Below are positions 16,410 to 50,365 of a stretch of DNA of 64,000 bases, piece by piece. A program made the translations under genes and the position numbers. Numbering within the stretch: position 1 is the first letter of the stretch; each line of letters starts with the position of its first letter. The DNA lies in the sequence record NC_048053.1; one strand, 5' to 3'. Below the pieces are notes generated by a model that was given only the letters and a program-made list of their open reading frames with translations, made no database searches and was not told the origin of the DNA.

Positions 16410-18188
16410 TTAGAAAATTTTGCGCTTAACTTGTGAATAGTAAACTTCAAAAGGAGCGCCATATAAAGCAGGGCCACGTTGCGCACGCGCCGTAACTTTA
16501 CCTGTATGAAGATGCACTTCGGTGATTTCTACCGTAGGCTGTTTCGGGCGAATAGTTTCGTAGATAGGTGCATTCAACGTAGGATAATCCTCGTAGAATT
16601 TAGCGAAACTTTCTTGCTGTTCTTTGGTAGCAGGAGGCAGAGTTAAACGCAATTCAGCGGCTTTCTTACCACGCGCCAAACGAACAGCACCTTTTTTCAA
16701 AGGTACGCCTTGATACATCAGATAAGAAGTAATGCGGCGAGCAATACCCAATACCTGATCATAAACAACGTCATTCATTTCTGGCGCACTAAAACGAATT
16801 CCGGTTGTTGGTTGTGGATGAGCCAGACGAACGCCAGTGCTGAAATAACCTTCTTCAATCAGGCGGCGCAAGAAGTCATAGGTTTTTGCAACGGTGCCGT
16901 CATAGATCGGAAATTCAATTTTTGGCGCATCAGCTTTAGGTTCAACAAAAGTTGGAAGCTGAACAGGCGCAGCCATTTTAACAGTCTGCGAAACTTTATA
17001 AGTGTTCTCCAGAATAGGAGTTGTTTTGATTACAACTTTATTCTTAATTGCTTTCTTATAGTTTTCGTCAGTGGTGAGTGAAGTAAATAGGCGATAGTCA
17101 ACCGGACTCGTATAGCCGCCGATAATATCGCGCACCTGCGTTTGCAGTTTTGCCTGCGTGTCAGCAAAAATTACGCGACTACGGTTAGGCGTACTCGGAG
17201 AAACCGGGAAGAACGCGCCGTAAACAGTTTTGATGTTGCGCGGCGATCCTGTTCCCGTAACCTTAGTTGCATTTTCCAGTTTCGGAAGTTTTTCAGCCTG
17301 ACCGACAGGCGCAACTTTCGGCGTACTGCGAATCGCTTTACCTTTAATATAACTGGTGCCTTCCGGATCAACAGTCAGATTACTCAGCAGAGTTTTCACT
17401 GCTTGAGAATCCATCCAACTTTCAATAGGAACAGCGAGATTGTGCGCGAGATAATGTTTCTTACGGCGCAGCAGAACAACAGTGCCTTTCGGAATAAGAG
17501 GCGAGAGAAGTTTTTTCTTCGCAGTTCCGACATAAGCAAACGAGTCGTTCTTCAAATCTGAAATTTGACCAAACGGTGCGGTAAATTCCAGAGCGCCCAT
17601 GATGTTCTGCGCAGTTTCATGGCCGCGAACAATAAACTGAATTCGAGGACTATCTTTCAAACGAAGATCATAACGGTCTTTGTTGAGATAGGTAATCTTG
17701 ATCAGATCGCCTTTCTCAAGTTCCAGATCATATTCGTCCGAAGCATCATCTACCGCCATTTTCTTGCCAGTATATTTGAGATACTTAGGCGCGGCAGATT
17801 CAGAGCTAACATCCAGCACATCGAAAACACGTTGAGAGTTTTCAGCATACTCACGCGCAGCAAGCATAGCGGTAGCGAGATTGTAGCTAATGGATTTTTC
17901 TTTCGGTGGAACTAACTGAACATGAACACTGCTACTTGCGCTCATGAAAACAGTTTGATTATCGTCGCGAGTTCCGGCGAAGTGCATTCCAGTAAGACGC
18001 TCTACCGCGTCAGCACTAATGCTTTCGTGTGCGATACGATCACCGGGAACAATTTCAGTGATCTCCCCACGGTGCCAGACATATGCGGCGCGTCCGTTAT
18101 GACCAATAAAATGATCACCTACTTTAGAAATTGACCGTGGGATAATTCCCAAGTCAGAGATAACGCGAGAAGGTTTTTGAACAATCAT
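16410..18188 (-). CDS. putative internal head protein
   Basis: 592 aa; several N-terminal S-x-S motifs; two copies of the shared Y(K/R)YxG domain. Confidence 0.65.
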   Translation of the reverse strand: MIVQKPSRVISDLGIIPRSISKVGDHFIGHNGRAAYVWHRGEITEIVPGDRIAHESISADAVERLTGMHFAGTRDDNQTVFMSASSSVHVQLVPPKEKSISYNLATAMLAAREYAENSQRVFDVLDVSSESAAPKYLKYTGKKMAVDDASDEYDLELEKGDLIKITYLNKDRYDLRLKDSPRIQFIVRGHETAQNIMGALEFTAPFGQISDLKNDSFAYVGTAKKKLLSPLIPKGTVVLLRRKKHYLAHNLAVPIESWMDSQAVKTLLSNLTVDPEGTSYIKGKAIRSTPKVAPVGQAEKLPKLENATKVTGTGSPRNIKTVYGAFFPVSPSTPNRSRVIFADTQAKLQTQVRDIIGGYTSPVDYRLFTSLTTDENYKKAIKNKVVIKTTPILENTYKVSQTVKMAAPVQLPTFVEPKADAPKIEFPIYDGTVAKTYDFLRRLIEEGYFSTGVRLAHPQPTTGIRFSAPEMNDVVYDQVLGIARRITSYLMYQGVPLKKGAVRLARGKKAAELRLTLPPATKEQQESFAKFYEDYPTLNAPIYETIRPKQPTVEITEVHLHTGKVTARAQRGPALYGAPFEVYYSQVKRKIF

Positions 18189-18197
18189 GACCTGTCC

Positions 18198-18638
18198 TTA
18201 TATCGAAATTTTTCGCATTGAGTGTTGCTGGAGAAGTCGAAGATTTCCAAACATCACATTATATGCAGAGGTTCCATACGTGTGGATGAGTTCGCGAGGA
18301 ACAAACGTGCCGAAATAAAGACAGTTAGGATCGAGTTGAGTGATTTCCATTCCAACGTTTTTATCAATGTTGGAAACCACCCACACCCACGGTTCCGCAA
18401 AGAAACGATCATTGCGAACATGGATACGATAACCAATTGCCATTTCTCGACCGCTAGGATCAAACGAAAACAGATCAACAGTTTTCTTATTCATTGCTTT
18501 CTGTACGGTGAACAATGCCATCGTGCGAAACTTTTCAGAAAACTGCGGAAGGTGCGCGTTGTCCTGTTCTATTTGCAGCAAGATTTTGTCTTGCTGTTCC
18601 TGCGTCATCTTTCCAAAATATTTTATTGCGAAAGGCAT
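18198..18638 (-). CDS. hypothetical protein
   Basis: 146-aa ORF coupled to the upstream kinase gene. Confidence 0.75.
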   Translation of the reverse strand: MPFAIKYFGKMTQEQQDKILLQIEQDNAHLPQFSEKFRTMALFTVQKAMNKKTVDLFSFDPSGREMAIGYRIHVRNDRFFAEPWVWVVSNIDKNVGMEITQLDPNCLYFGTFVPRELIHTYGTSAYNVMFGNLRLLQQHSMRKISI

Positions 18639-19216
18639 TTCAGAATCTCCCCGACAATTTCGGTAGGAGTTGTATTATCGGTACTGAATACTGCATCATA
18701 GCCGCCCGGAAGATTCCGATAACGGTCTTGATACATTTCGAAAGTTTCGGCATCGACCATACGCGCTTCAATATTGTCGCTACCTTCGCGCTTATCGCCA
18801 CGACGAGAAACATAAGTGTCGTATGTGCAAGTAAGCAGGATGCTAACTACTTGAACATCCGGACGCAGAATATTAACAGTGCGATCAAACAGCACTTGCG
18901 TCTTATCGTCTTTGACTTGCAGCGCCCACGTTGAAGGCCAGCCACGATCAGAAATAACTACATCGGCAGAGGACTCCGCAAGATAATCCATCAAAGAAGA
19001 TCGTGCGGCGAGAAACAGAAGCATTTCAGTTGTCGGCGAGCGCACATTATTATCATGCAGCGCGATGTTGCGAAGCTGTTCCGCAAGTGGAGTTGTTCCC
19101 GGCTCTCGAACACGGATAACACTCATATCGCGCAAACGCAGAGACGATTCTAAAATTTCTGCGGTAGTGGATTTTCCCACACCTTCTGTTCCTTCAAGGA
19201 GGATGTATTTTTTCAT
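18623..19216 (-). CDS. tmk: thymidylate (dTMP) kinase
   Basis: P-loop EGTEGVGKST; VREPGTT; LLFLAAR; VISDR; start reassigned to MKKYILL. Confidence 0.93.
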   Translation of the reverse strand: MKKYILLEGTEGVGKSTTAEILESSLRLRDMSVIRVREPGTTPLAEQLRNIALHDNNVRSPTTEMLLFLAARSSLMDYLAESSADVVISDRGWPSTWALQVKDDKTQVLFDRTVNILRPDVQVVSILLTCTYDTYVSRRGDKREGSDNIEARMVDAETFEMYQDRYRNLPGGYDAVFSTDNTTPTEIVGEILKCLSQ

Positions 19217-19220
19217 TTGA

Positions 19221-19709
19221 TTACCTAAACTTGCCTCCACGCCATGCAGCATGGATTAGAAGACGGGAAAGGATTTTGTTTGATGTTTCGTGTGCTGTAG
19301 CATTCTTTTTAACTCGCGCATTACCTAAAGAAGTTACAACAATAACCCCCGCTCCGCTGCCTTTAATGCGAGCAAGAATTTTCTCTCCGTGAGATTCAAA
19401 CAAACGTTCAGAAATAACGAAATAAAACTTGTGGCAGTATTCAAAGTATTTGTGCCATTTCTTATCAGAAGAGAAATCAGCCCAACTACTTTTGACCTCA
19501 GAGATTACTACATGACATTTTGTGTTGAGTGACCAAACATCTGCACGTAGATTGCCGTATTTGTTCAAACCAAATTCAATGTGATTAGAATATCTCTTAT
19601 CGATCCAGTAACCCACAACTGCTTCCGTTAAAAAGGCAGTTGTCTCGCCACGCGACAAACTTGTGAAAACAACTGCGGGTTTCCGGATTTTAATTCTTCT
19701 ACGACGCAC
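19221..19709 (-). CDS. mmcB: MmcB-family PD-(D/E)XK nuclease-like protein
   Basis: RADVWSL...ISEVKSSWADFSSDKKWHKYFEYCHKFYF is the MmcB/DUF1052 signature. Confidence 0.85.
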   Translation of the reverse strand: MRRRRIKIRKPAVVFTSLSRGETTAFLTEAVVGYWIDKRYSNHIEFGLNKYGNLRADVWSLNTKCHVVISEVKSSWADFSSDKKWHKYFEYCHKFYFVISERLFESHGEKILARIKGSGAGVIVVTSLGNARVKKNATAHETSNKILSRLLIHAAWRGGKFR

Positions 19710-20151
19710 CTAATTCCAACTTCTTGATTGCCTGTTTCAGAACAGGTTTCCAATCGCGATCAATCTTTTTAAGCGCATCTTCGGCAGAGAACCAACGACG
19801 TTCGCGTTGATGTACTTCCAGATAGTTATCAAGTTCTTCATGCACCTGCATCAAAAACCATGTTACTTTCTGGAGGCGTCCGGTACTGCCTTTAACGTAT
19901 TCCATTTTAGCAATTTTCTTGCCGGGAACACCGCGCAGACCTGCCTCTTCCATTGCCTCTTTTATCGCGCTCGCTTCCAACGAAAGATCCGGTTCCTTAC
20001 CGCCTTTTGGTAATCCCCAATTGTTCGCGTGCTTTGTGCGAATCATGCAGATTTCCAAATCACCTTCATCGTTGTAGCGATACGGAATAACGCCGCTTTG
20101 TTTGCGAGGCTTGCGCCCGTCGCCTTCATCCAACGTGAGAATAACTTTCAT
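19699..20151 (-). CDS. Nudix hydrolase
   Basis: WGLPKGGKEPDLSLEASAIKEAMEEAG Nudix box; N-terminal SGVIPYR. Confidence 0.92.
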   Translation of the reverse strand: MKVILTLDEGDGRKPRKQSGVIPYRYNDEGDLEICMIRTKHANNWGLPKGGKEPDLSLEASAIKEAMEEAGLRGVPGKKIAKMEYVKGSTGRLQKVTWFLMQVHEELDNYLEVHQRERRWFSAEDALKKIDRDWKPVLKQAIKKLELGAS

Positions 20152-20654
20152 AAATAATCATTCGCTCTCGGTTTCGGTTCATCCCAATTCCACGCACGGT
20201 CTACCCAAAAACCTGCTTTGGAAAGCGCGTCAACTGCACTACGAAGAGTCGAACTTCCGACAACCACATATTCTACAATTGCGTCGCCAACATTATAACC
20301 ATACTTGTAGTTACCCAAGCAATAGGCGAAAGACGATTGTTTTGGATCGAAAAGAACTTCTCCTGACTGACTCACGACGATTGCGCTGCACGGCGCACCT
20401 TCCGGAACAGTAGAAAGAATTTCAATACGAGCGTGAGGATTGCGACGATAACAACGTTGAACGAATTGAGCACAATCAGCAAAGGAACGTGCAATAATTG
20501 CAGCGCGACTATCGTTATATTGATGTGCGTCTTCAATGATATTGCGAGCACCAGTGAGATTAAAACCAGCAGCAGCGATCATAATAGCCAACGAAGACGG
20601 TTCAATCTGCGCGGCAAAAGTGTTTGAACCAAACACTTCCGGAAACGTTTTCAT
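20148..20654 (-). CDS. hypothetical protein
   Basis: start reassigned to MKTFPEV with GGGAG RBS. Confidence 0.75.
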   Translation of the reverse strand: MKTFPEVFGSNTFAAQIEPSSLAIMIAAAGFNLTGARNIIEDAHQYNDSRAAIIARSFADCAQFVQRCYRRNPHARIEILSTVPEGAPCSAIVVSQSGEVLFDPKQSSFAYCLGNYKYGYNVGDAIVEYVVVGSSTLRSAVDALSKAGFWVDRAWNWDEPKPRANDYL

Positions 20655-20680
20655 AAATATCTCCCAATGAATTGTCTTAC

Positions 20681-20965
20681 TCAAATTAGCGAGTTTGGAC
20701 AACTCAGTATTTGCATACGCGACGAGGTACGCAGAATACCGCCAATCTGCACGCCGTATTTTGTGGGATGTTTTTCACGCGTCCAGTTCACATTAACTTT
20801 CGCAAACTGTCTGATTGCACGATTGGCGAATTTTCCACGCAGAATAAGCAAATGGCTTCCATGAGGAAGCCCCAACTTGCGCGTAGAATCGCATACGAGT
20901 TTAAAGATGTTTCTGGCGTGAATCTCAGTAACTTCTTCCTCGCAAAAAATTCTAATCTTTAGCAA
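20681..20965 (-). CDS. hypothetical protein (probable TTG start)
   Basis: fills the gap between neighbours; GGGGA 8 nt before TTG at 20965. Confidence 0.45.
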   Translation of the reverse strand: MLKIRIFCEEEVTEIHARNIFKLVCDSTRKLGLPHGSHLLILRGKFANRAIRQFAKVNVNWTREKHPTKYGVQIGGILRTSSRMQILSCPNSLI

Positions 20966-21578
20966 AGCCGATTTCCCCGGAATGATCGGATAACACGAAC
21001 ATGTTTTCGCAAAGATATTCGTTAGGAACATCGGCGCTCGGAATAGAGTCATCAAAAAGATGAGTGACAATATCCGAACTATTGAAATGCTGAATATCGC
21101 TAACGCGCCCGATCAAAATGGATTTTCCAGCCAGCGCCTGTTTATCTGTGTAAAGCACCGATGAATTAAAGGTGCCAGCACCGATCCAAAGAACAGAGGC
21201 GACGTGTGGAAGATTTTCTTCAAGCGCCAGTGTAGGCACGCTCTCTAAAATTTCCAAATCAACATTCTCAGTTTTGAAAAATTCTTCAAGACTGCAAAGA
21301 ATGCACGAACGATTTTCCGGACGGCGGTGACGCTTCAAACGCACGAAAGGTTTGTTGCATTTCACCGAAAGTTGATCGGTTATATACTGACCGTTTTCGA
21401 TATCAACGTCTTCCGATTCCAAAGCATAGACCGAAGCGAGAACGCTTTGCTGAATACCAGCCCAACGATTGTGCAATTCACGATCATCAGTGCCACGCAA
21501 AGTTACATCGGTGCGCAACACGCGCAGAATTCCGTCAGCGATAAAAGTGACTAAAAGTTTTTTGCGGAGAAAGTACAT
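20952..21578 (-). CDS. hypothetical protein
   Basis: 208-aa ORF with AGGA RBS, co-oriented. Confidence 0.75.
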   Translation of the reverse strand: MYFLRKKLLVTFIADGILRVLRTDVTLRGTDDRELHNRWAGIQQSVLASVYALESEDVDIENGQYITDQLSVKCNKPFVRLKRHRRPENRSCILCSLEEFFKTENVDLEILESVPTLALEENLPHVASVLWIGAGTFNSSVLYTDKQALAGKSILIGRVSDIQHFNSSDIVTHLFDDSIPSADVPNEYLCENMFVLSDHSGEIGFAKD

Positions 21579-21587
21579 AGTGTTTCC

Positions 21588-24256: not shown

Positions 24257-24259
24257 AAG

Positions 24260-24481
24260 TTACTCCTGAGCAAATGCGCCAGATTTAAAACGAACAGCAA
24301 TGTTTTTCATTCCTAACGCTTCGAGACGACTATTAACGCACAAAGGGCAGAGCGATCCCTGTTCAAGACCGTCTGCCTCTGGCGTCGCTTCTCGAAGTAG
24401 TTGCCACGCGGTTTCAGAAATAACAAATTCAGGATATGAATTCGCATTACACCACGCACAAAAATTCAGAGAAACTTTCAT
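24260..24481 (-). CDS. small CxxC...CxxC protein
   Basis: CAWC and CPLC motifs; GAGGT RBS. Confidence 0.7.
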   Translation of the reverse strand: MKVSLNFCAWCNANSYPEFVISETAWQLLREATPEADGLEQGSLCPLCVNSRLEALGMKNIAVRFKSGAFAQE

Positions 24482-24487
24482 GTAACC

Positions 24488-30787: not shown

Positions 30788-31456
30788 TTATTTCTCCACG
30801 ATGATCAAACAAGGACGCATAGCGCCGTCGATTTTCATCATAGCCGCACCGACAATATAACCACGCGGAATAACTTTTAGCACTGCATCCTCAAGCGCTT
30901 TTTCCCACTTGTCTTTTGGCTTACCATCAAACGGGGAATAAGTATCCGTCGCATCATAGTAATTATAAGTTTCAGTTGTTGGCATAGGAACGCCAGCAAG
31001 AAACTCTAAACGATTTGCGCCAGAAATTTTCGCCTTACGAATTGCTTCTGTCAGTTTTTTATTTTCTTTGCCGACAGAGTTATCCACTTCGTAGATACGT
31101 GCTTCCATCGGTGCATCTTTTGGCTTAGTAGGAAGTTTTTCTTGAGCCGTGGTATTTGCTTTCTTACCAGTGACTTTGATTCCCTTCACCTTGCCAGTAA
31201 ACGGACGCGAACGACCTAACAGAGAGCGTGCAGTTTTAGCGTCAATCAGAAAAACAACATCGGGATCGTCACGATGCAGCACATAGATTTTATTCTTAAT
31301 GATGCACGTACCAAAAACATCTTTGGCTTCGATATCTGCCTCGAAATCTTTGTTCTCGATATAAACTTTTCGAGCACCTTCGAAACGATACCAGTCACAA
31401 TCTTCGATTTTGATTTTCGGTAAACGCGGAGCAGATACACTCACAAAAAACAGCAT
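30788..31456 (-). CDS. putative head protein with shared Y(K/R)YxG domain
   Basis: N-terminal VSVS-A motif; DWYRFEG...DVFGT domain. Confidence 0.6.
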   Translation of the reverse strand: MLFFVSVSAPRLPKIKIEDCDWYRFEGARKVYIENKDFEADIEAKDVFGTCIIKNKIYVLHRDDPDVVFLIDAKTARSLLGRSRPFTGKVKGIKVTGKKANTTAQEKLPTKPKDAPMEARIYEVDNSVGKENKKLTEAIRKAKISGANRLEFLAGVPMPTTETYNYYDATDTYSPFDGKPKDKWEKALEDAVLKVIPRGYIVGAAMMKIDGAMRPCLIIVEK

Positions 31457-35419: not shown

Positions 35420-36514
35420 TTAGGCTCTCTGCGCTTTAGCCACGGAGCGAACGTTAGCCAGCGTGAAGGAGAACACGCTAGACAGCAGCCAGCCACGGTC
35501 AGTAGAACCCTGATTCGCGCCAGAAGTAGGCTGAGACTGAGTGCCGCCGCGAGTGGTGTACATCGCGTGGTAATCCTGATCAGCTACAACATACAGTTCG
35601 CCGTCTTGCAGTACGCGATGTTCCGGAGCGCGGAAACCGTCAGTAACCAGATCCAGACCGAGCAGAGTACCGAGACGACCAGTAGTGATCAGTTCGTATT
35701 TACTTACCGGATCGAGAGCGGAAGTAAACTGATCGTTACCGATGATATCGTTCCAGTAATCAGCCGCCAGAATCGCGGTAGTTACAGGCATAGGCCACGC
35801 GCTCACTTGCTGTTTCAGAACAGACAGCAGGCGCGGAGTCAGTTCGCCGTGAATGTAAGTTACCGGGTTAGCCATACCGACAGAACGATCCGCCGCTTCT
35901 TTCCACAGACGATCTTCTGCAACCATGATAGATTGCAGACCGTCTTGCTGCGCACGATCCAGCAGGTCGCCGTTGATCTGTTCCAGATCCATGCGAGAAA
36001 CACGGATGATGGATTTCAGTTCAAACTCGTCCGGAGTGAACACACGACCGCGCAGTTGGCGATAACCATATTCAGAAGGACCGGTTGCAATAATTGCCTG
36101 GGCCTGGTGAGTTTTCAGTTCCACACGCGGAACGTCGCCCTGACGAACGGTTGCGCCTTTACAGATGCGACGCAGAAGACCTTGACGTTCAGCACGGTCT
36201 TCGATTGCGCCAACAATTGAGGCACCGAGAGAATCCCACTTCGCCGGATCAGCAGCAGCTTCTTCGATCAGTTGACGGTTTTCTTCGCGAATCTGATCTT
36301 TGGTCATGCCAACGTGAGATTCAGAAACTTCCTGAATGTCGCCGTTTTGTGCAGCATTCAGCAGTTGACCGATACGACCGATGAGATCTTTCTTGCTGAT
36401 CGCGTTCACTTCGCCCGTCGATTCAGACAGAATACGCTCACCGTTAATTTTCAGATCGTGCAACGGGTCGCCGTTACGCAGAACAACTTTAGCACCACGC
36501 AGTTGATTTTTCAT
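35420..36514 (-). CDS. major capsid protein (HK97 fold)
   Basis: 364 aa, strongly biased codons; follows protease, scaffold and a decoration-like gene; LLRRIC...QGDVPRV...DEFEL pattern. Confidence 0.88.
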   Translation of the reverse strand: MKNQLRGAKVVLRNGDPLHDLKINGERILSESTGEVNAISKKDLIGRIGQLLNAAQNGDIQEVSESHVGMTKDQIREENRQLIEEAAADPAKWDSLGASIVGAIEDRAERQGLLRRICKGATVRQGDVPRVELKTHQAQAIIATGPSEYGYRQLRGRVFTPDEFELKSIIRVSRMDLEQINGDLLDRAQQDGLQSIMVAEDRLWKEAADRSVGMANPVTYIHGELTPRLLSVLKQQVSAWPMPVTTAILAADYWNDIIGNDQFTSALDPVSKYELITTGRLGTLLGLDLVTDGFRAPEHRVLQDGELYVVADQDYHAMYTTRGGTQSQPTSGANQGSTDRGWLLSSVFSFTLANVRSVAKAQRA

Positions 36515-37272: not shown

Positions 37273-37336
37273 AGTTTTATATCTCCGAAAAATTTAGTCT
37301 GAACTTTTATCAGTTCAATTACCGCGTCAGTCTACA

Positions 37337-39325
37337 TTAGCGACCGAAGCGACGTTTCAGCCTTTCGTCGAAAGATTCTTTAGAAGAACTTTGCGATTCG
37401 ACGGTTTCCAAACTTTCTTCACGTTCTTCTTTAGAAACGCTAGGAACTTTCGGAGTTTCTTTCGTCTGACGTACAGTACCAGCCGAACCAGCAACGGCTT
37501 CGGCGATTTCGTTCTGAGCTACTTCTGATTTTGCCATCAGCGCATCAGCCTGAGACAGAGAAGCACGCAGGAAATCTTCCGAATTGTTGATGAATGCACG
37601 CTCAACCAGAGGGCGCGGATCTGCGATACCTGCATTACGCAGAGTAGCGCAAAGTGATTCAACAACCGGGTTGCTGGAATCGCGCCAGAAGTTGCGTGTA
37701 ATGCCGAGCATCGAAGTGGACAGTGCCGCAACGAAACGCTCACGATGGGATTCAACCATATCGCTAACAGTTTCGTTTACCGTAGAGGAAACGCTGTTAA
37801 CGCGAGCGTCAGCTTCCGCAGTCAGCATTTTGCTAACAGACAGTTGCATAACGAACGGTTCAAAGCCAAAGTTTTTGCAGGTTTCTTCCACGCCAGCATT
37901 GTGCAGAGATTTACTCACAGCACGAATGAAATCTTCTTTATCGAAGACGCGACGCGCAGAATCTTCACCAGCGGCGTTGCTAAAGCTACTGAAAGTAGCG
38001 CGTGCAACAGGTTGACCGTCATAGAACAGGTGAACCGCAGGAACACGACCGTTAACGGTGCGAGACAGAGAAACCAGAGACGGATCGAGATTTTCGTGTT
38101 CAGCTTTAACCGCAGAGAGGCTATCGAAAGAGCGAACTTCCGCAGCGTTTTCATCTTTGGTATTCAGATTGCGAACAGAACTTTCGGATTCAATTTCGTC
38201 TTCGTCGTCAAACTCTTCGTCGTCGAAATCATCATCATCCTCATCTTCTTCTTCTTCGTCGTCGAATTCTTCATCTTCGAATTCTTCTTCGTCGTCGAAG
38301 TCATCTTCTTCGTCGTCTTCGTCATCACCGGAGCAGGACTTTTTAGATTTGGATTCAGAGTCGAAATCTTCGTCGTCCTCTTCTTCCTCATCATCGAATT
38401 CTTCGTCATCGAATTCTTCGTCATCGAATTCTTCGTCATCCTCTTCTTCGTCTTCGTCGGCAGAAGATTCAGAATCAAACTCTTCGTCATCTTCCTCTTC
38501 TTCGTCTTCGTCGAAGCCTTCATCATCTTCCAGTTCCTCTTCTTCCAGAATATCGGAAGAATCATCGTCACTGCTTTCAGAAGCAATGTCGATCAGAGGC
38601 GCGGAACAGTGAGCGCAGAAAACAGTGTCGTCGTCAGTTGCGATGGTGAACGGAGCCGCGCAATTTGCAGAGCAAGAATATACGTGAGCTTCCAGTTTAC
38701 CGTTCGAAGACAGCGCCTGAATTTCTTCGCTTTCCAGAACTTTGGATTCGCTAATCGGCAGACAGCTATACGGATCGAAGTGAACGCCATCAGCGCAAGC
38801 AACAAAACTTGTTGCGGAGGACAGAGCAGTAACTACGTCCTGTTTGCGAATTGCGTTTGCCAGATTCTGTTTTGCGTTTGCCAGCGTAGTACCCACGGCA
38901 ACAACAGAAGAACGAGAAACAGATTCTTTGTTTTCGTTTTCCATGTGGTCGAGAATACGATCATCAGAAACTTCTTCCAGACTTGCAGAGCAAGACGGGC
39001 AATGCGTGATATTCGCACTGCTATCACTAACGATGTGACAGCCGCAACCATCCAGACAGATATGGTATTGTGCTTTCACGTTAGCGGCAGAAGATTCGGA
39101 TTGGAATTCGGCCTGCGCCACCAACTCAGCGTCTTCTTCAAGCAGCTTAGTGCTGCCTTTCGGATCGAAAAGGTCAACGTTGCTTTGCGAAGCATAAACG
39201 TCGCCGCTCTCAGAACGGTAGAACATAGAGTTCTGACCAGTTGCAGTTTTGCGGAAGTTTTCGACTGCTTGAGCGTGGCTGCCACCGACACTAACAATCC
39301 CCGCCAGACGGGTAGTTTTAGGCAT
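37337..39325 (-). CDS. scaffolding / prohead core protein, highly acidic, with two Zn-ribbon units
   Basis: long D/E tract; CLDGC..CPSC and CSANC..CAHC; many SES motifs; start reassigned to MPKTT. Confidence 0.75.
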   Translation of the reverse strand: MPKTTRLAGIVSVGGSHAQAVENFRKTATGQNSMFYRSESGDVYASQSNVDLFDPKGSTKLLEEDAELVAQAEFQSESSAANVKAQYHICLDGCGCHIVSDSSANITHCPSCSASLEEVSDDRILDHMENENKESVSRSSVVAVGTTLANAKQNLANAIRKQDVVTALSSATSFVACADGVHFDPYSCLPISESKVLESEEIQALSSNGKLEAHVYSCSANCAAPFTIATDDDTVFCAHCSAPLIDIASESSDDDSSDILEEEELEDDEGFDEDEEEEDDEEFDSESSADEDEEEDDEEFDDEEFDDEEFDDEEEEDDEDFDSESKSKKSCSGDDEDDEEDDFDDEEEFEDEEFDDEEEEDEDDDDFDDEEFDDEDEIESESSVRNLNTKDENAAEVRSFDSLSAVKAEHENLDPSLVSLSRTVNGRVPAVHLFYDGQPVARATFSSFSNAAGEDSARRVFDKEDFIRAVSKSLHNAGVEETCKNFGFEPFVMQLSVSKMLTAEADARVNSVSSTVNETVSDMVESHRERFVAALSTSMLGITRNFWRDSSNPVVESLCATLRNAGIADPRPLVERAFINNSEDFLRASLSQADALMAKSEVAQNEIAEAVAGSAGTVRQTKETPKVPSVSKEEREESLETVESQSSSKESFDERLKRRFGR
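38391..38435. repeat. 15-nt tandem repeat x3 (DDEEF)
   Basis: tcatcgaattcttcg repeated three times. Confidence 0.9.
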
Positions 39326-39408
39326 GGTGAAACCCTCTATAAATAAGTCGGTTATCGACACATTAAAATTAATGAATGCAGGAAATTTTCGAAAGTTTTT
39401 GAAACTTT

Positions 39409-40512
39409 TTAAAGCGTCCGGCTTTCAATATCTTCGTCCGGAATATAGCGGTTTACGAAATATTTTTCGACCACATCAATTCCGTTTAGAGCGTAAACTT
39501 TTCGCAGACTATCTCCCCAAACCATAAGTTCAGCAAGAGTAGCGAAATGTTCCATTGCCATCGTATTCTTTCCGGCGGCAACGTTCCTTATTGGATGAAT
39601 GTCTTTGCCTGCGATTGCCGCTTTGAATTTCATTCTATCCACATTTCGAAGCAGGGTTGAATCAATGAAATGCGCAAGTTCGTGAGTAATAACATGAGCT
39701 ACGCTTTTACTATTGAAACCGCCGAGCAACTTAACGATTTGTTTCGGGTCGAGGATGATTACTCCGTATTGCACACCGTTATAGCGAGTGTTCAAAATAA
39801 AGCAGCCATCATCACTTAAACCGAGTCCGATAAACAAACGTTTAAACGGCAACGGAACTTTTAATCCGATTGCAGGCATTACGTTATCCTGAATATCTTG
39901 CATTACATAATCAGGACAAGAGCGAGCGGATATACTGGAGCGTAAACCTGTTTTCAAATAATCCTCGTAGCTTTGAACTTCGAGTTTTACTTTGCCGCAT
40001 TTTTCCAGTTTCTTCACTTCGTAGTTATTAATGCTGCCGCCACCATAAACAGTATTAGCGTATTTCAGAGGCTTTAACTGTTTGTAGTTGACGTGTTCTT
40101 TTTCCTGAATTTCTTGCGCACGTCGCGTATTAGCGATTTCTTCCGTTTCATTAGAAACGGGCGCAGGTGCAGGAACAGCACTTTTATTTACTTGAGAAGG
40201 ATAAGCTGTAGGTGCCGGAATTGGCGCAGCAATTTCAGGCTTCGGAGTCTCCGAAACGTTCGCTTCTGGTATATCGAAATTAAAATTTTCAGGAAAAAGT
40301 TTCGCAGGATTTGCAGTAAATTCGCGAGAATCTTCACGCACCTTATTTCCCAATTCAATTGCAACTGGAATAACTTGTGATTGTTTTGGACTAGCGATAT
40401 AAGCAACGCCATCCCCAAATGCAACGCCAACAACATCACGCGTAGTTATTTCCAGTCCATTAGATCTCAGCGGCTCGCCGCCTAAATAACGATAAAAAGT
40501 AAAATCTTTCAT
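39409..40512 (-). CDS. zinc metallopeptidase-like protein
   Basis: ITHELAHFID (HExxH) plus downstream EHFA; N-terminal shared FYRYLG domain. Confidence 0.75.
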   Translation of the reverse strand: MKDFTFYRYLGGEPLRSNGLEITTRDVVGVAFGDGVAYIASPKQSQVIPVAIELGNKVREDSREFTANPAKLFPENFNFDIPEANVSETPKPEIAAPIPAPTAYPSQVNKSAVPAPAPVSNETEEIANTRRAQEIQEKEHVNYKQLKPLKYANTVYGGGSINNYEVKKLEKCGKVKLEVQSYEDYLKTGLRSSISARSCPDYVMQDIQDNVMPAIGLKVPLPFKRLFIGLGLSDDGCFILNTRYNGVQYGVIILDPKQIVKLLGGFNSKSVAHVITHELAHFIDSTLLRNVDRMKFKAAIAGKDIHPIRNVAAGKNTMAMEHFATLAELMVWGDSLRKVYALNGIDVVEKYFVNRYIPDEDIESRTL

Positions 40513-41330
40513 CAGCGTTTAATCTGCATTAGTTGGTTAACTTCGGTTGCTGCGCAGGCGAATGCAGGATCATCAACAGAACTACATTCAAAACCAGTAA
40601 GCAGCAAACAGTTGCGATATGCAAGACGGCCTGAACGTGCATCAAGTTTCGTCGGCACATTGAACGCAGTATGTTCGCAGAAGTTACGCGTTTTAGGAGT
40701 AACTAAACGACCACAGATACTGCATTCATATGCTTTGTATGTCGTGCCTTTCGAATACGTGTTCAGTTCACCTGAAAGAATACGGCGGCAACGTTCCGGT
40801 TCCAGTGTACGGTCAAATGCCAGCAGCAAACTAAGTACCGCGTGATTGCCACGGAAACCAATGAGCGGAGACAAATGACTATCGAAAATAATTCCGCGTG
40901 CTTTCGTATAGTCTTTGTTTGCGTGCTCAATAAAAGTTGGTTTTCCTTTAAAAGTTTGGAAAGCCAATTTTCCTTGATCGGGATTGAAGCGCAACCATTC
41001 TTCTTTCGAAAATCCATCGCCGTTAGTGTTAGGCAATTCAGTTACGTTAACCGGAACAGGAACGATGATATAATCGCGAATATCTTTTGACGTGTTATAA
41101 ACTTCCGCAGCTTTGGGCAACCACACGTTGATATCAAGCATTAAATCGCTAGATGCCCCAATGCGATTGCCTGCAATGCGAATAGATTTATTATCGCGGG
41201 AGGCTTCTTCTTTGTGAAGATCAATTGCTTCCATTCCCGTGTGTTGAGTAGAACTCAGGTCGAAAGATTTACTCTCAACGGAATTGCTAATAGCAGCAAC
41301 CGTTCCTTCATTTTTAAGTCGAATAGTCAT
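40512..41330 (-). CDS. prohead maturation protease
   Basis: PNTNGDGF...FKGKPTFIEH...YSKG...CSICG...ECSSVDDPAF pattern (His/Ser) of phage head proteases; upstream of the scaffold. Confidence 0.8.
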   Translation of the reverse strand: MTIRLKNEGTVAAISNSVESKSFDLSSTQHTGMEAIDLHKEEASRDNKSIRIAGNRIGASSDLMLDINVWLPKAAEVYNTSKDIRDYIIVPVPVNVTELPNTNGDGFSKEEWLRFNPDQGKLAFQTFKGKPTFIEHANKDYTKARGIIFDSHLSPLIGFRGNHAVLSLLLAFDRTLEPERCRRILSGELNTYSKGTTYKAYECSICGRLVTPKTRNFCEHTAFNVPTKLDARSGRLAYRNCLLLTGFECSSVDDPAFACAATEVNQLMQIKR

Positions 41331-41336
41331 ATTGTT

Positions 41337-41759: not shown

Positions 41760-41763
41760 ACAA

Positions 41764-42651: not shown

Positions 42652-42658
42652 GATAACC

Positions 42659-43759: not shown

Positions 43760-43769
43760 AAGTGTTTCC

Positions 43770-44687: not shown

Positions 44688-46654
44688 GTCACCTTGTATT
44701 TCTTTTTAAACTGATCGATAGTATAAATCGGAATGCCTTTATCCATCGCCTTTTGAACTTTGCTGCTACCGCTTCCGGGATCTTTCGCAATCAAAACAGT
44801 AGTGTCTGCTTTCATGCTATCCGATGCAGTGCCGCCCAATTCGACAATACGCGCTTTCAAATCAGCATCACGCACGCCAGTAAACGCAACGTTAACACCG
44901 TTCAACTTATTGCTTTTCACAACAACTTTCTTCGGAGCTTTTAACTTGATGCCAATTTCCTGCGCCAAGTCGTAAGCATTAATACACGCATTGGAAATCT
45001 TAGGTGCAAGAGATTTGATGCCGTGAATGCCGCTAATAAGTTCCGTAAGATCAGAACGGCGTTTAAGCAGTTTCTGAATATCAGGAATCTCATCGACAAC
45101 TTTATCAAAGGAAGTATTTGCGCCGCGCATGAAATAGGGAGCACAAGCCTTGAGCCACACATTCAATTCAATTCCAGAAAGAATTGTTTTGTTGTGTTTC
45201 GCAATTTGCTTGCCGCGAGCATCACCCAAAATCCCACGCAATGTAGGCAGGCCGCAAAGAATAAGCGACTTAGGATCTTTGATTCCGCTTTCCATCAACA
45301 GATTTGCAGTCTTATCCCCGGCGTTAGAATATTCAGCAGTCGCCATAAAACTTTCAAGAAGTTTTGCATCAGCGGTGGCAGATTTTTTCTTAACGCGGAA
45401 TTCAACGCCTTCCATTGTATAAGGCACGTCCGGAAGTTTCGCTTTCTTCGCAGGGCGCACAATTTCCTGAATGTAGGGAATAACTTTATTACTGCGCACA
45501 AGTTTTACTTTTGCACCGATACCCAACGGACGTTTTTCATGAGGCGGTTTCTGCCCTTTCTTCGTTGGTTTCAGATAGCCATGTTCGATGTAATATCCGT
45601 TATGACCATTAGCGCGATTGATTGTGATCCCGCCGGGAACAACTACAGGTTCCACAATAACAACTGGTGCAAGCACGCCGTATTTTGTTTCCTGATAAAC
45701 TACATCCTTCACGGTTGTAATAACGCTATCCGCACTTGTATTCATTTTGAATTTGAATTCATGTTTCGGATTGCTTGAGGTTGAAGCAGGTGAAGGAATA
45801 TCATCAGATACAACAAGGCCATCCAACTCGTATTTGGATTTGCGCATACGGTCTTCGATCATCGTTACCAATTGTTCTTCGGTAAGATCGTCGAATGGCC
45901 CAAAGTGGCGAACCACAGTGAACCCATATTGTTTTAGAAGTTTAAATTGATCGCTTTTCTTTTTCTTTGAAGCAGCGCCGCCGATAATGCCGAAACAAAC
46001 GAGATCGATATGTTTGATTTCAGGTGGCGACTCAAAACGACGCATCAAACCAACAGACGCAGGACGAGCAGAAGTATATTCATAATCGCCCGGAGCGTCT
46101 TTGTGGAGCGTAGCCATAAATTTCTTCTGACTGATTAACGCTTCGCAACGAACAATGAAACGTTCTTTCGTTGAAATCTTTTTCGGAATATTAAACGAGG
46201 CCAAATGGCGCGTAACGTCTTTGCCCTTCGTACTGTCACCGCGAGTATAAGCAGCAACAGGAATTCCTTTTTCGTAAATCAGTTCAATGCTCTGACCATC
46301 CAACTTATCGCTAACGATTTTACTGTTACCGTTACTCAGGTGTTTCGCGAGAGCCGGAGAAGAAAGTTTTAGTTGGTTCAGACTCGCCATAGGAACAGGA
46401 AGCGGAACATCACTATCATCATGCGAGCCGATCTTTTTAGCCAGCGTAGATTTAGGCCAGCGTTCAGAAATATAATCGCGAATCGTGTCGTAAATGGTAT
46501 CATCAACAAGCGGCTGTCCTTCATCATATGCGTCATCGAAAGCATTGATAAGTTTTTTGGCCTGCGTCAGATTAAGAGTTTCCATTACTTTGATAGGATT
46601 CTTTTCTAATCGTTTTAGGCTTATGCTGGCTGAAATACTTTTGAATTCAGTCAT
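44684..46654 (-). CDS. ligA: NAD-dependent DNA ligase
   Basis: domain Ia (AYDEG...DD..YD), motif I KLDG, TRGD, ELDGLV, KFK, OB-fold and C-terminal BRCT (VAFTG...SSKVQKA). Confidence 0.96.
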   Translation of the reverse strand: MTEFKSISASISLKRLEKNPIKVMETLNLTQAKKLINAFDDAYDEGQPLVDDTIYDTIRDYISERWPKSTLAKKIGSHDDSDVPLPVPMASLNQLKLSSPALAKHLSNGNSKIVSDKLDGQSIELIYEKGIPVAAYTRGDSTKGKDVTRHLASFNIPKKISTKERFIVRCEALISQKKFMATLHKDAPGDYEYTSARPASVGLMRRFESPPEIKHIDLVCFGIIGGAASKKKKSDQFKLLKQYGFTVVRHFGPFDDLTEEQLVTMIEDRMRKSKYELDGLVVSDDIPSPASTSSNPKHEFKFKMNTSADSVITTVKDVVYQETKYGVLAPVVIVEPVVVPGGITINRANGHNGYYIEHGYLKPTKKGQKPPHEKRPLGIGAKVKLVRSNKVIPYIQEIVRPAKKAKLPDVPYTMEGVEFRVKKKSATADAKLLESFMATAEYSNAGDKTANLLMESGIKDPKSLILCGLPTLRGILGDARGKQIAKHNKTILSGIELNVWLKACAPYFMRGANTSFDKVVDEIPDIQKLLKRRSDLTELISGIHGIKSLAPKISNACINAYDLAQEIGIKLKAPKKVVVKSNKLNGVNVAFTGVRDADLKARIVELGGTASDSMKADTTVLIAKDPGSGSSKVQKAMDKGIPIYTIDQFKKKYKVT

Positions 46655-46677
46655 GAAAATTCCCTCTGCAAATATCC

Positions 46678-47601
46678 TTAAACATTTACAGTTTCGGCGA
46701 TGCGATTCGCAATAAAATCAGGAACCGTATTCATCGTTAAGCCATTACGTTTCGCCAACATAATAAACGCTTCTGCGTATTTAAGTTGTTGACTACCAAC
46801 ACCGCTAAATTGACGAGCATTGAGCAAGCGTCGAGACAGCTCGGAAACGATTGTTTGGCGAGTACGGAAACCGGAATTGATGTTTCGCAGCATTTGAAAA
46901 TACTTATGAACATCAGACTTGATTGAGAAAGTTTTAATGCCACTAAAATCTTTTCTGATAGCAGCATGAAGCAACACAAGGAAAGGATACAAATCTTCTT
47001 TCTGTCTGGCTTCGTTTTGTTTCTCAATGTCCTTAATGAAATCAGGACGGTTATCAGGTTCAGGAATTTGTTTGCCAGTGAGAGTCGAAGTCACATCGTT
47101 AAACAGTCCGATGCGTTTAATAGGCTTACGCGACAGCATATCTTTTTTGCTGCCATAGAAGTAGACTGGAATATTTCTTTTGCGTGCCTGCAAAGCAATA
47201 CCACGCAGATACATTCCATTACTTTTAATTCGCGCCTCTTCTTTTGTTCCAGCATTACAGTGAATTTCTTTAACGATACTGATATCAATATCCGGCTTAT
47301 CGATAATAATGCGTTCTTCGGACTCAGAATATTCAGCGCCGTTCTGCCAGAAATCAACAGGAACAACTTTATAGCGCGACCGGATTTTGTCAGCGTCAAG
47401 CACAAACAAAACTTCCGATCCGCCATTAGTTCGAATTGCGAAAATATTACTCAGTGTGCGGGTAGTGGAAAGGAAGAAGAGTCTGTTTTGAGAAAACTCT
47501 TCTTCCGCCTCGCTTCCGGAGGCAATACTCAAATGAAATTTTCCACTTCCCACAATACTCAGCGCATTTTTCGGCGAAGTAAAGTGGAAGAGTGTATTCA
47601 T
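46678..47601 (-). CDS. ADP-ribosyltransferase-fold protein (paralog 2)
   Basis: LFHFT...FFLSTTR...VLFVLD...SESEER. Confidence 0.55.
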   Translation of the reverse strand: MNTLFHFTSPKNALSIVGSGKFHLSIASGSEAEEEFSQNRLFFLSTTRTLSNIFAIRTNGGSEVLFVLDADKIRSRYKVVPVDFWQNGAEYSESEERIIIDKPDIDISIVKEIHCNAGTKEEARIKSNGMYLRGIALQARKRNIPVYFYGSKKDMLSRKPIKRIGLFNDVTSTLTGKQIPEPDNRPDFIKDIEKQNEARQKEDLYPFLVLLHAAIRKDFSGIKTFSIKSDVHKYFQMLRNINSGFRTRQTIVSELSRRLLNARQFSGVGSQQLKYAEAFIMLAKRNGLTMNTVPDFIANRIAETVNV

Positions 47602-48440
47602 AGATCTTTTATCGCCTCATAAATAAAACGAGGAATACCCGCGATTGTAATGCCTTGCTGTTTAGCAAGAATCGCAAGTGCTCGCGGAGTTTTCACGCGC
47701 GAATCATCGCTAGGATAATTGCGAGAGTTTCCGATATCATTACGCAGACCCGTTGCCAGTTCATTGTAACGATATTGATCGCCGTAGCTTCCACGAATTT
47801 TATCGTAGATATATGCAACTTCACTATCACCTTGCTTTAAAAGTTTAGGGATAGTTTTATTGATCGCTGCGTGCATCAATTGAAGCCACGGCATAACGTA
47901 GTCTCTACGGCTACGCGGAATATAACCACCACGAATGATTTTAGATTTAGCCAGAATGCGAGGATCATTAAGAGGTACGCGACGCTCTTTACGCATTGAG
48001 ATCATATCTTTTTGATTGTCGTAGGCAAACACGCTTACCTTTCGGCGTGAGCAAGCCAAAACGAGATCGCGAAGATATTTTCCATCATCGTTACGATCCA
48101 AGTTAATGTGAACAGCAATAATAAACGGCGTCGCCGGGATAGTCGGCTTATCAGTAATCAAACGTTCCTCAGCTTCGGAATATTTGTGATTCGCCCAATA
48201 GTCCATCGGTTCAAGTTTGTAACGAGACTCAAGAGCACGTCCGTCAAGTTCAAACATTACGCCGTGTGCTTTATCCGCAAACGCATTGCTTCGAGTACGC
48301 GTAAGAGACAGATAAAACAACTTACCTTTATTGATTGCTTCGTCAGATTCGGCAGCATCTGCCATACTCAGAAAGAATCGGTTATCAGAAACAATCTGCG
48401 CCGCTTTGTGAGTTTGAGTAAAGTGATATAAAGGTTTCAT
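47598..48440 (-). CDS. ADP-ribosyltransferase-fold protein (paralog 1)
   Basis: LYHFT...FYLSLTR...VMFELD...SEAEER. Confidence 0.55.
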   Translation of the reverse strand: MKPLYHFTQTHKAAQIVSDNRFFLSMADAAESDEAINKGKLFYLSLTRTRSNAFADKAHGVMFELDGRALESRYKLEPMDYWANHKYSEAEERLITDKPTIPATPFIIAVHINLDRNDDGKYLRDLVLACSRRKVSVFAYDNQKDMISMRKERRVPLNDPRILAKSKIIRGGYIPRSRRDYVMPWLQLMHAAINKTIPKLLKQGDSEVAYIYDKIRGSYGDQYRYNELATGLRNDIGNSRNYPSDDSRVKTPRALAILAKQQGITIAGIPRFIYEAIKDL

Positions 48441-50365
48441 CAGCTTACAATAGGTTCCTTGTTGACTTCAAACTCTTCTGACATATCGTACACGCGAGCG
48501 AATAGAGTTGGTTTCATATCCTTCACATGTTCTGCAATATCGAAAAGACTTTGTTTGCGAGCTTTATTGATTCGCACCTGACGAACTTCGTCCGGGCTGT
48601 TAGTGATATCGTAAAGCGTGTATACGATAATACTGTCAGAAGATTTATGCGGAGCTTCGCGGAGAATTACCCATTCACGTTTGAGTTTTTCATCGGCTTT
48701 GAACACCACAATATCGCCTGCTTCCGGATTCGCCAATTTCTCTGGCGTGCCTTTATTTTCTGTAGCTTGTTTTTTAGCAAGTTCAGCGGCCTCCTGTTCA
48801 GCGTTGAGAACATCCTCATCGACTTCATCGGAATCAGTTTCATCAATATCAGCAGCGTCGTCTTCGGAATCCGCTTCTTCCTCATCCTCTGAATCATCTT
48901 CTGAATCATCCTCTGAATCATCTTCTGAATCATCTTCTGAATCAGGATCTTCATCTTCTGCATCAGGATCTTCATCTTCTGCATCAGGATCTTCATCTTC
49001 TGCATCAGGATCTTCATCCTCAGAATCAGTTTCATCTTCTGAATCATCCTCTGAATCAGTTTCGTCTTCGGAATCAGTTTCGTCTTCCTCAGAATCTGAA
49101 TCATCCTCTGACTCTTCTGGAGCAGGTTTCGCGCCTTTAGCTTTTTTCTTAACTTTAGACGGTGGCGCTTCTTCCTCTTCGTCTTCCGGTTCTTCCTCAA
49201 CATCGGACAAATCGAAATCACTATCGACAGAATCAGAATCATCGCCTTCGCCGAACATGGAACCTATAACCGAATCAATTCCCATATTGTCGCTGGCGAA
49301 CGGACGCGCAGAAAGAATATCTTCAAGCGGAGCAAACATATCGTCTTCCTCTGCCAATTCTTCTTCCGCTACTTCCGCTTCAAGTTCTGCATCTAAATCC
49401 TCTTCTTCCTCTAATGCTTCTTCGGCAAGAATGGATTTGATTTGATTGCGCAGACGAACAGTAGGTACAGCGTTCTCTTCCGTGTCGAACGTGAGCGGTT
49501 TTGCAGTAGGAGCTTCCATTTCACCACGTTTGATTTTTTCTTTCATTTCATCAAAACGTTCTTGCTCTGCGCGAGCATTTTCTTTTTGCGCTCGTTTCGC
49601 GTCACGCGCAGAAACTTCCTTAGCAAGTTTTTCAGCACGCTGTTCAAGACGCGCAGCTTCACGCATTTCAACCTGCGAGCGATGTTTCAATTTTTTACTA
49701 TTGGCACGATATGCCTTAACGTCAGCATCGGACAGGGAACCGTTGGGCCAGTCCTGAATCGGCATAACGAGAGTTTCCGCAACAACTTTATCGTAGTTTT
49801 CCGGAGAGAGTTTTAAATACATCCCTTTCTCGTTAATAATAACGCCACCTTTCGCATCGCGAATATAACGCATACCGATCATTTCGTTCTTTTTCAGAAT
49901 CTCTTTGCCTTTAGTGTGAGTAACAGTCAAAGACAACTCTGGAACGATACGCCACTGATAGTTGCTAAAATCAATGCCGTTTTTATATTCATTAGGAACA
50001 GTGCGCGGAGCAAATCGAGCATTGTCGAAATTCTTACGCTGCAATTGACGTTCCGTAGTTTTAACGCCGCGAGCTTTCGAACGGCCTTCGCGCTGAACGA
50101 TATCAGGCAATTTGCGCAGTTTGGTTGCACGTTCAAGCAACTGATTACCGTTCTTTTTATCGAGCGGAAAATTGATATGAGGCATATCAGGAAAAATAAG
50201 AGTGAAACGAGATCCGCTTTTCAGAGACTTAACGCCAAAAATATCGCCTTCGCGAATCATGCGTTTATGGGTACGTTCCGAAACTTCTTTGCCTCGTTGC
50301 CCTGTATATTTGAACCAGTTGTATTCGCTAACCGCTTCGTCATATGTAGCCGACTGAGAGAGCAT
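48440..50365 (-). CDS. acidic putative internal head protein
   Basis: N-terminal LSQS-A; shared WFKYTG domain; D/E low-complexity tract. Confidence 0.7.
   Translation of the reverse strand: MLSQSATYDEAVSEYNWFKYTGQRGKEVSERTHKRMIREGDIFGVKSLKSGSRFTLIFPDMPHINFPLDKKNGNQLLERATKLRKLPDIVQREGRSKARGVKTTERQLQRKNFDNARFAPRTVPNEYKNGIDFSNYQWRIVPELSLTVTHTKGKEILKKNEMIGMRYIRDAKGGVIINEKGMYLKLSPENYDKVVAETLVMPIQDWPNGSLSDADVKAYRANSKKLKHRSQVEMREAARLEQRAEKLAKEVSARDAKRAQKENARAEQERFDEMKEKIKRGEMEAPTAKPLTFDTEENAVPTVRLRNQIKSILAEEALEEEEDLDAELEAEVAEEELAEEDDMFAPLEDILSARPFASDNMGIDSVIGSMFGEGDDSDSVDSDFDLSDVEEEPEDEEEEAPPSKVKKKAKGAKPAPEESEDDSDSEEDETDSEDETDSEDDSEDETDSEDEDPDAEDEDPDAEDEDPDAEDEDPDSEDDSEDDSEDDSEDDSEDEEEADSEDDAADIDETDSDEVDEDVLNAEQEAAELAKKQATENKGTPEKLANPEAGDIVVFKADEKLKREWVILREAPHKSSDSIIVYTLYDITNSPDEVRQVRINKARKQSLFDIAEHVKDMKPTLFARVYDMSEEFEVNKEPIVS
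48941..49020. repeat. 21-nt tandem repeat, about 4 copies (DEDPDAE), flanked by 12-nt SEDD and 18-nt SEDETD repeats
   Basis: atcaggatcttcatcttctgc repeated. Confidence 0.9.

Follow-up and report, generated by a model that had tools for sequence, protein, structure and literature searches.

What does a small domain do that recurs in four otherwise unrelated phage proteins, and does it mark them for a common destination? The question is raised by a 64,000-nucleotide stretch of DNA (the window) comprising bases 62001–126000 of the 253-kilobase (kb) genome of Dickeya phage vB_DsoM_JA29 (NC_048053.1, genus Salmondvirus). JA29 is grouped with the Pseudomonas phages PaBG and Lu11 and the Erwinia phages Y3, Yoloswag and Alexandra (PMC7412058). 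A first-pass annotation of the window, made by eye, had aligned a domain of ~70 amino acids (aa) across four proteins and read it as a capsid-targeting or inner-body assembly module appended to different cargoes. All four open reading frames are present as claimed, on the minus strand like every gene in the studied region:

16410–18188, minus strand: gp107 (592 aa; phrog_32352), with an N-terminal region, an S-E-S-A site, a KMPT-N domain and a conserved C-terminal part without assigned function
30788–31456, minus strand: gp124 (222 aa), with a leader, KMPT-N and a C-terminal domain without assigned function
39409–40512, minus strand: gp133 (367 aa), with KMPT-N, a proline-rich disordered linker, a middle region and a predicted zincin metallopeptidase; its gene immediately follows that of the prohead protease
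48440–50365, minus strand: gp142 (641 aa; phrog_35607), with a leader, two KMPT-N copies, a coiled coil, a polyacidic tract of ~200 aa and a conserved C-terminal domain of ~80 aa

The shared domain is confirmed as real, homologous and common to unrelated partner domains. All four proteins match Pfam family PF20294 (KMPT-N) with E-values (E) from 4e-14 to 5e-17, the bit scores of 53.1 (gp107), 55.2 (gp124), 59.5 (gp133) and 62.4 (gp142) comparing with a gathering threshold of 28.9 bits. The pattern drawn up by hand coincides with the family consensus, WYxYxG ... GDxFG ... D(x)PxxxF. A genome search with a hidden Markov model (HMM) had been proposed in the first-pass annotation as a check; a six-frame scan of the whole 253-kb genome returned the same four proteins and no KMPT-N protein beyond them. 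Profile comparisons (hhalign) gave 98–99.9%. The domain is not new, being already catalogued in Pfam as the 'KTSC and Metallopeptidase N-terminal fusion domain', and UniRef already labels orthologues of the JA29 proteins by KMPT-N; the term KMPT-N, or any function for the family, was not found in the literature searched. The individual copies are as follows:

17592–17789, minus strand: KMPT-N copy of gp107, aa ~134–199 (Pfam aa 135–196, 53 bits; hhalign 99.0%)
17334–17576, minus strand: possible degenerate second copy of gp107, aa 205–285 (weak hhalign signal)
31193–31402, minus strand: KMPT-N copy of gp124, aa ~19–88 (Pfam aa 20–83, 55 bits; SH3-like barrel plus helix in the AlphaFold2 model)
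40321–40509, minus strand: KMPT-N copy 1 of gp133, aa ~2–64 (Pfam aa 4–62, 59 bits; no leader ahead of it)
39715–39921, minus strand: KMPT-N-like region of gp133, aa ~198–266 (below the Pfam cut-off in JA29)
50123–50326, minus strand: KMPT-N copy 1 of gp142, aa ~14–81 (Pfam aa 15–79, 62 bits)
49778–49963, minus strand: KMPT-N copy 2 of gp142, aa ~135–196 (independent HMM and hhalign)

The second copies are of unequal standing. That of gp142, listed as possible in the first-pass annotation, was recovered over the whole model (independent E-value 5e-6) by an independent HMM, built from the strong domains of other proteins only, with the window proteins as well as P0088 and P0115 (45-residue repeats) excluded; the gp142-family profile gave an hhalign value of 99.4%, and the copy is present in 11 of 16 gp142-like representatives. 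The second copy claimed for gp107, at the FAYVG stretch, received an hhalign probability of 33% (P 4e-4) compared with at most 2% for five control segments, and no HMM match, which is suggestive only. A further region, aa ~198–266 of gp133, was absent from the original list; its Pfam score is 23 bits in JA29 but reaches 44 bits (E 6e-12) in the orthologue from Y3, profile comparison with KMPT-N gave no support (hhalign ~1%), and in the structural model it forms an alpha/beta subdomain ahead of the catalytic helix, inside the zincin match at aa 175–340. Its status as a degenerate KMPT-N copy is ambiguous. At the other end of gp142, the C-terminal domain of ~80 aa (aa ~555–641; 48440–48700, minus strand) has five residues, F555, D558, Y585, V597 and R598, that are invariant in 16 sequences; it matches no family and may be another small beta-rich domain.

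A common fold, as the first-pass annotation had anticipated, emerged from structure prediction. An AlphaFold2 model built on a 78-sequence domain alignment (predicted local distance difference test, pLDDT, 94; predicted template modelling score 0.83) consists of six short strands followed by a C-terminal helix and one last strand, and the full-length model of gp133 (pLDDT 85) shows the same fold at aa 1–64. The best matches in the PDB are the SH3 domains of Pex13p, OSTF1 and ASAP1, with Foldseek probabilities of 0.87–0.97 and template modelling scores of 0.47–0.58; since the Foldseek E-values are 0.07 or higher, the match holds at the level of fold only. Superposition of gp133 aa 2–66 on SH3 folds with VIA-align gave Z scores of 4–5.3 over ~58 residues at 2.2–3.0 Å, the best being 5.3 at 2.2 Å. 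On these models KMPT-N, some 70 residues long, is predicted to fold into a basic SH3-like beta-barrel carrying a C-terminal helix; its copies have a median isoelectric point of 9.35 and are net positive in 82% of cases. It falls into the same fold class as SH3 and SH3-like barrels (Pex13p, OSTF1, ASAP1, FeoA and bacterial SH3b), and by eye its WYxY and GDxFG elements occupy the places taken in SH3 domains by ALYDY and the strand after it. It differs from SH3 domains in its additional C-terminal helix and strand and in having no significant sequence relation to them. PDB searches with the domain profile and with the gp107, gp124 and gp133 family profiles yielded no meaningful relative of solved structure, the designed symmetric trefoils and HSP90 among the hits being low-complexity artefacts; an ESM Atlas feature search returned scores of at most 0.61, with bacterial SH3_3 as the only leads.

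Pairwise identity among the four JA29 copies is as low as 13–22%, which might suggest a resemblance due to chance or composition. This explanation is refuted by the Pfam scores, all four of which pass a curated threshold, and by the profile comparisons; two independent models also arrive at one fold, and we consider the probability of chance similarity to be practically nil.

The cargoes to which the domain is attached were said to include a peptidase, and this held for gp133, the catalytic domain of which lies behind the linker:

39493–39990, minus strand: zincin catalytic domain of gp133, aa ~175–340, with HELAH at aa 277–281 (39670–39684) and E321

H277, E278, H281 and E321 are invariant in 34 homologues. 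Compared with minimal zincin folds, aa 175–340 gave Z scores of 5.0–5.7, a range graded 'common arrangement' by the tool. From its HExxH motif, the downstream Glu and the modelled fold, gp133 is a predicted zincin metallopeptidase, sharing these features with minimal zincins such as selecase, Wss1/SprT, PPEP and the catalytic domain of anthrax lethal factor. It differs from them in matching no Pfam peptidase family (SprT-like PF10263 gave no hit at E≤1) and in the modest Z scores. Between the two domains of gp133 lies a proline-rich linker, from aa ~81–100 (40213–40272, minus strand) through ~120, that is predicted to be disordered (pLDDT <50 over aa 84–121); its proline pattern is partly kept across the family, and it could be a ligand for the SH3-like domain or a mere spacer.

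Beyond JA29, KMPT-N is a small family, with 77 hits at E≤1e-3 in a profile search of 1.84 billion representative proteins, PF20294 being present in 66 of the 68 representatives scanned. Clustering by the non-domain part yielded 27 gp124-like, 16 gp142-like, three gp107-like and three gp133-like proteins (each of these counts including the JA29 protein), four SprT-like peptidase fusions, stand-alone domains of 87–94 aa, several unassigned partners and two Tad6 groups. The fusions in the Pfam name thus recur here, in the zincin of gp133, in the SprT-like domain found in PaBG gp89 and four representatives, and in a KTSC domain fused to KMPT-N in one representative. Every context encountered, among the named hits and six contigs examined, is that of a jumbo phage. 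Homologues of gp124 or gp133 in phage isolates, 59 records in all, come without exception from jumbo phages of the PaBG group, and the metagenomic contigs examined share as neighbours the genes for thymidylate kinase, MmcB, topoisomerase I, PAAR, a gp25-like baseplate protein and NAD ligase, as well as that for a giant SNF2-type helicase. Y3 encodes the same four KMPT-N proteins as JA29, and PaBG has three, namely gp89 (SprT-like), gp217 and a 185-aa protein numbered gp107. This last protein (L003:22241–22795, minus strand) is encoded between the portal and terminase genes and carries an N-terminal KMPT-N domain without a leader; its C-terminal half appears KTSC-like by eye, which corresponds to the 'KTSC fusion' of the Pfam name.

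In four proteins from other jumbo-phage contigs (P0081, P0089, P0132 and P0143) the partner is Tad6 (PF25188), placed N-terminal to one or two KMPT-N copies; P0132 sits at the genomic position of gp107. Tad6 inhibits Thoeris by binding ThsB, the active site of which it blocks (PMC13728456); a search for it in the JA29 genome gave no hit at E≤1. Two metagenomic Tad6 fusions (L004:8001–10760 and L005:8001–9692) have a conserved FAESVS(S/T) after Tad6 and S-x-S-A before KMPT-N, an arrangement that might allow Tad6 to be cut out within the head and set free as a protein of its own.

The feature that points to a destination for these proteins stands just ahead of the domain. An S-x-S site near the start of the domain had been noticed in three of the four JA29 proteins, and it is indeed present in three, each time followed by Ala, the N terminus of gp133 having no S-x-S:

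17793–17804, minus strand: S129-E-S131-A132 of gp107, a putative protease site; S131 is invariant and S129 and A132 are kept in at least 90% of 27 orthologues
31430–31441, minus strand: S6-V-S8-A9 of gp124, at the end of an 8-residue leader; the Y3 orthologue starts MLIFLSESA
50348–50359, minus strand: S3-Q-S5-A6 of gp142, in the leader; the Y3 orthologue starts MVLSESA

In its full form the motif reads hydrophobic-hydrophobic-S-x-S-A; it is conserved across the KMPT-N family and retained by the Y3 orthologues. S-x-S-[AST] occurs at most 26 residues upstream of 47 of the 72 first copies (65%), and [SA]-x-[SA]-[AST] upstream of nine more, compared with a background rate, elsewhere in these proteins, of 2.2% per window of 28 residues. 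Ala follows in 46 of the 47; Leu, Glu or Ile usually fills the middle position, and Ile, Leu or Phe the two positions ahead of the motif. Most often the domain starts 8 residues further on. The motif closes a leader of 5–10 residues in 38 cases, gp124 and gp142 included; in the other nine, among them gp107 and all four Tad6 fusions, it is internal and always directly before the first copy. A signal peptide was rejected as an explanation for the leader, given a hydrophobic stretch of only ~5 residues and the internal occurrences of the motif. A SISA sequence before the second region of gp133 was likewise rejected as another site, being present in only four of 34 orthologues. Two further conserved S-x-S sites lie in aa 1–92 of gp107 (17913–18188, minus strand), PSVSA at aa ~55–59 with A59 invariant and FMSxSS at aa ~81–86, and from these sequences the N-terminal 130 residues of gp107 may be cut into several pieces.

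The leader is not confined to KMPT-N proteins. Of the 306 proteins of JA29, ten show S-x-S-A among residues 1–16, compared with 1.4 expected (P<0.001). Five consecutive genes at 152924–159162 of the JA29 genome (minus strand), encoding proteins of 653, 595, 189, 353 and 155 aa, have the motif in this position; the proteins show almost no family matches, homologues sought in PaBG were not found, and all five can be regarded as additional candidate proteins of the head interior or of the ejected set. For the ligase gp139, the annotated start MTEFKSISAS (46628–46654, minus strand) contains the motif, whereas the Y3 ligase starts at the equivalent of about residue 10 (ISLKRLEK); because of this later start the gp139 leader is probably a start-codon artefact, the JA29 start having been called too far upstream.

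The same S-x-S recurs in proteins of head assembly. Within the window the genes for the capsid protein, a scaffold-like protein and the maturation protease neighbour each other:

40512–41330, minus strand: gp134, head maturation (prohead core) protease (phrog_18299, E 1e-113)
35420–36514, minus strand: gp130, major capsid protein, with S30-E-S32 (36419–36427) and S64-E-S66 (36317–36325) in its N-terminal part
37337–39361, minus strand: gp132, annotated 'ATPase' (phrog_20988), an acidic, S-x-S-rich, scaffold-like protein

Both S-x-S positions of gp130 are kept in JA29, Y3 and PaBG. The PaBG capsid protein sheds ~20% of its mass on maturation (PMC7412058), to which the second position, at ~18% of the length of gp130, offers an indirect fit. 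In gp132, the gene of which adjoins the capsid gene, S-x-S occurs 27 times compared with 11.4 expected from shuffles (2.4-fold) and SES seven times compared with 1.65 (P≤0.0005); its Y3 counterpart, Y3_141, likewise has 27 S-x-S compared with 10–11 expected (P<0.0005). No Pfam ATPase domain matches gp132; this highly acidic protein contains D/E-F-D-S-E-S units at regular intervals and two Cys-rich stretches resembling zinc ribbons. Its composition and position suggest that gp132 is probably a head scaffold degraded by the maturation protease, and that the 'ATPase' label is wrong. In PaBG the leaders read A-x-A or A-x-S, and the gp132 homologue is enriched in A-x-A (27 compared with 12.9, P<0.0005) and not in S-x-S, so that the type of motif co-varies between the leaders and the gp132 homologue, S-type in JA29 and Y3 and A-type in PaBG. 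A leader (MQIFSTSA) also begins a 1944-aa helicase-like protein of JA29 (137462–143296, minus strand; L008:1063–6897; phrog_21391). The PaBG homologue of this protein, gp202, opens with a similar leader, MGSLFTLNSLSA, and ranks as the largest of the proteins identified in purified virions of PaBG; phages of the PaBG/Lu11 group apparently package a giant helicase-like enzyme.

Because the motif occurs in the capsid protein, is enriched in gp132, co-varies in PaBG and is found on the leader of a virion protein, we infer that the prohead protease gp134 recognises S-x-S, with A-x-A or A-x-S taking its place in PaBG. We then assign a probability of about 0.45 to the reading that the KMPT-N proteins are internal to the head, processed and probably ejected, with KMPT-N serving as an adaptor. 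In most members the cassette consists of a short hydrophobic leader or an upstream domain, S-x-S-A, a spacer of ~8 residues and one or two KMPT-N copies. Such proteins would enter the prohead core and be cut by gp134 just upstream of the domain; since the site lies upstream, KMPT-N would be kept on the mature protein and not removed as a propeptide. After the cut KMPT-N would form the new N terminus, followed by the attached domain, which may be a peptidase (zincin or SprT-like), KTSC or the acidic coiled-coil protein. The mature protein would stay in the head and probably leave it with the DNA, and a domain upstream of the site, such as Tad6 or the N-terminal region of gp107, would be released by the cut as a free small protein. 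As an adaptor, KMPT-N might bind the acidic gp132 during assembly, the packaged DNA afterwards, or both. The Tad6 and peptidase partners fit pre-loaded effectors, and the position of gp133 directly after the prohead protease gene provides a context for this reading. A bolder version, in which leader, S-x-S-A and KMPT-N form a portable head-loading cassette that is trimmed by a Ser/Ala-x-Ser/Ala protease, delivers its cargo with the DNA and frees upstream domains such as Tad6, strikes us as rather unlikely. From the first-pass proposal the real shared module thus stands, together with a protease-type site pointing to the head interior. The inner body does not: JA29 belongs to the PaBG/Lu11 group and not to the phiKZ-like lineage, so that this part of the proposal has no basis, and the PHROG and Pfam matches of the JA29 KMPT-N proteins are exclusively to families without assigned function, with no inner-body homology.

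Several observations weigh against a head-internal, ejected adaptor. The gene for gp124 is flanked by two tail-tube genes and adjoins the sheath gene, and that for gp107 directly follows the PAAR, gp25-like and wedge (baseplate) genes. The gp133 family is generally without the motif. KMPT-N is present in only two of the ten leader-bearing JA29 proteins, so the domain is unneeded for the role of the leader, and the leader, rather than the domain, may therefore be the targeting signal. None of the three KMPT-N proteins of PaBG is among the 14 Coomassie-visible proteins of its virion, and of the PaBG virion proteins of unexpected or unassigned function only gp202, and perhaps gp83, has a leader, gp191, gp261, gp263 and gp81 having none. 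The SprT-like and KTSC partners would also fit a cytoplasmic, DNA-related role (cf. PMC7824862). A complex prediction of gp134, the capsid protein and aa 1–95 of gp124 can be listed here too, but with the partner left unfolded without an alignment (pLDDT 32) it is evidence neither way.

The strongest competitor, which we nevertheless regard as unlikely, takes up the point on partners and holds that KMPT-N is a nucleic-acid-binding SH3-like domain, in the style of Sac7d/Sso7d or the integrase C terminus, acting unpackaged in the cytoplasm, with S-x-S-A unrelated to head maturation. The basic charge and SH3-like fold of the domain would suit it, as would its absence from the PaBG virion proteins, and so would SprT-like peptidases and KTSC as partners, members of the SprT family being DNA-dependent proteases. 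KTSC has been called RNA- or DNA-binding by the Aravind group, and a cytoplasmic nucleic-acid role has been suggested for SprT-like and KTSC proteins (PMC7824862). Such a role leaves unexplained the fixed spacing of the motif, its recurrence in the capsid and scaffold-like proteins and its co-variation in PaBG, and it sits poorly with the location of the genes in structural modules; DNA binding would, moreover, be compatible with a head-internal adaptor if the bound DNA were the packaged genome.

Two further explanations turn on single aspects of the data. KMPT-N might be a docking (exosite) or substrate-presenting domain that binds gp134 and positions the site ~8 residues upstream, controlling processing rather than targeting or retention. 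The tight spacing and the near-invariant Ala after the motif, unlike the looser sites of the capsid and scaffold-like proteins, speak for this, and the site accompanies the domain even where the domain is internal. Yet the motif occurs without KMPT-N in the capsid protein, the scaffold-like protein and eight further proteins with leaders, and conversely KMPT-N occurs without the motif in second copies and in the gp133 family; we consider docking quite improbable. Marginally less probable again is a role of the KMPT-N proteins as minor structural or assembly proteins associated with the tail or baseplate, the domain binding a tail component. It draws on the tail-module positions of gp124 and gp107, which are kept in Y3 and one metagenomic contig, whereas gp133 and gp142 are encoded in the head-gene region, the gene for PaBG gp107 is flanked by those for portal and terminase, the motif is tied to head proteins, and the tail proteins of the PaBG virion are without leaders.

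Two known systems offer comparisons for the head-internal reading. The internal proteins of T4 (IPI–III and Alt) bear a capsid targeting sequence that is cut by the gp21 prohead protease at (L/I)-x-E; they are packed in the head and injected, IPI* being an injected anti-restriction protein. The JA29 arrangement resembles this system in having a short N-terminal leader that ends at a prohead-protease-type site on otherwise unrelated proteins, and IPI* is a possible parallel to the Tad6 fusions. It differs in the site, which here reads S-x-S-A (A-x-A in PaBG) and not (L/I)-x-E, and in what follows it, an SH3-like domain at a fixed spacing here and no folded domain in T4; packaging and cleavage, demonstrated in T4, are deduced here. 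For phiKZ, 201phi2-1 and SPN3US, Thomas et al. are said to have found that head and inner-body proteins are processed at S/A/G-x-E. These phages are similar in that many head-internal paralogues are cut by a gp21-like protease with a small residue at P3. In JA29 P1 would be Ser or Ala rather than Glu, the lineage differs, and the module would be a compact SH3-like domain retained after cleavage instead of a propeptide that is removed. We know of no inner body in the PaBG/Lu11 group.

What is new is the combination of the domain with a cleavage-type motif and a link to head maturation, which is testable; neither it nor the S-x-S-A motif, the tandem copies and the Tad6 fusions, all of which go beyond the Pfam entry, were found in the papers searched. 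The combination predicts a prohead-protease specificity in a group of jumbo phages for which none is reported in those papers, and it predicts about ten head-internal or ejected proteins in JA29. A further implication is a small tag with which foreign proteins might be loaded into the heads of jumbo phages. Judging by the Tad6 fusions, some anti-defence proteins may arrive pre-made, which would alter the view of the timing of phage and defence and has a bearing on Dickeya and Erwinia biocontrol phages. If true, the cassette would amount to a naturally occurring, modular means of injecting effectors before any genes are expressed.

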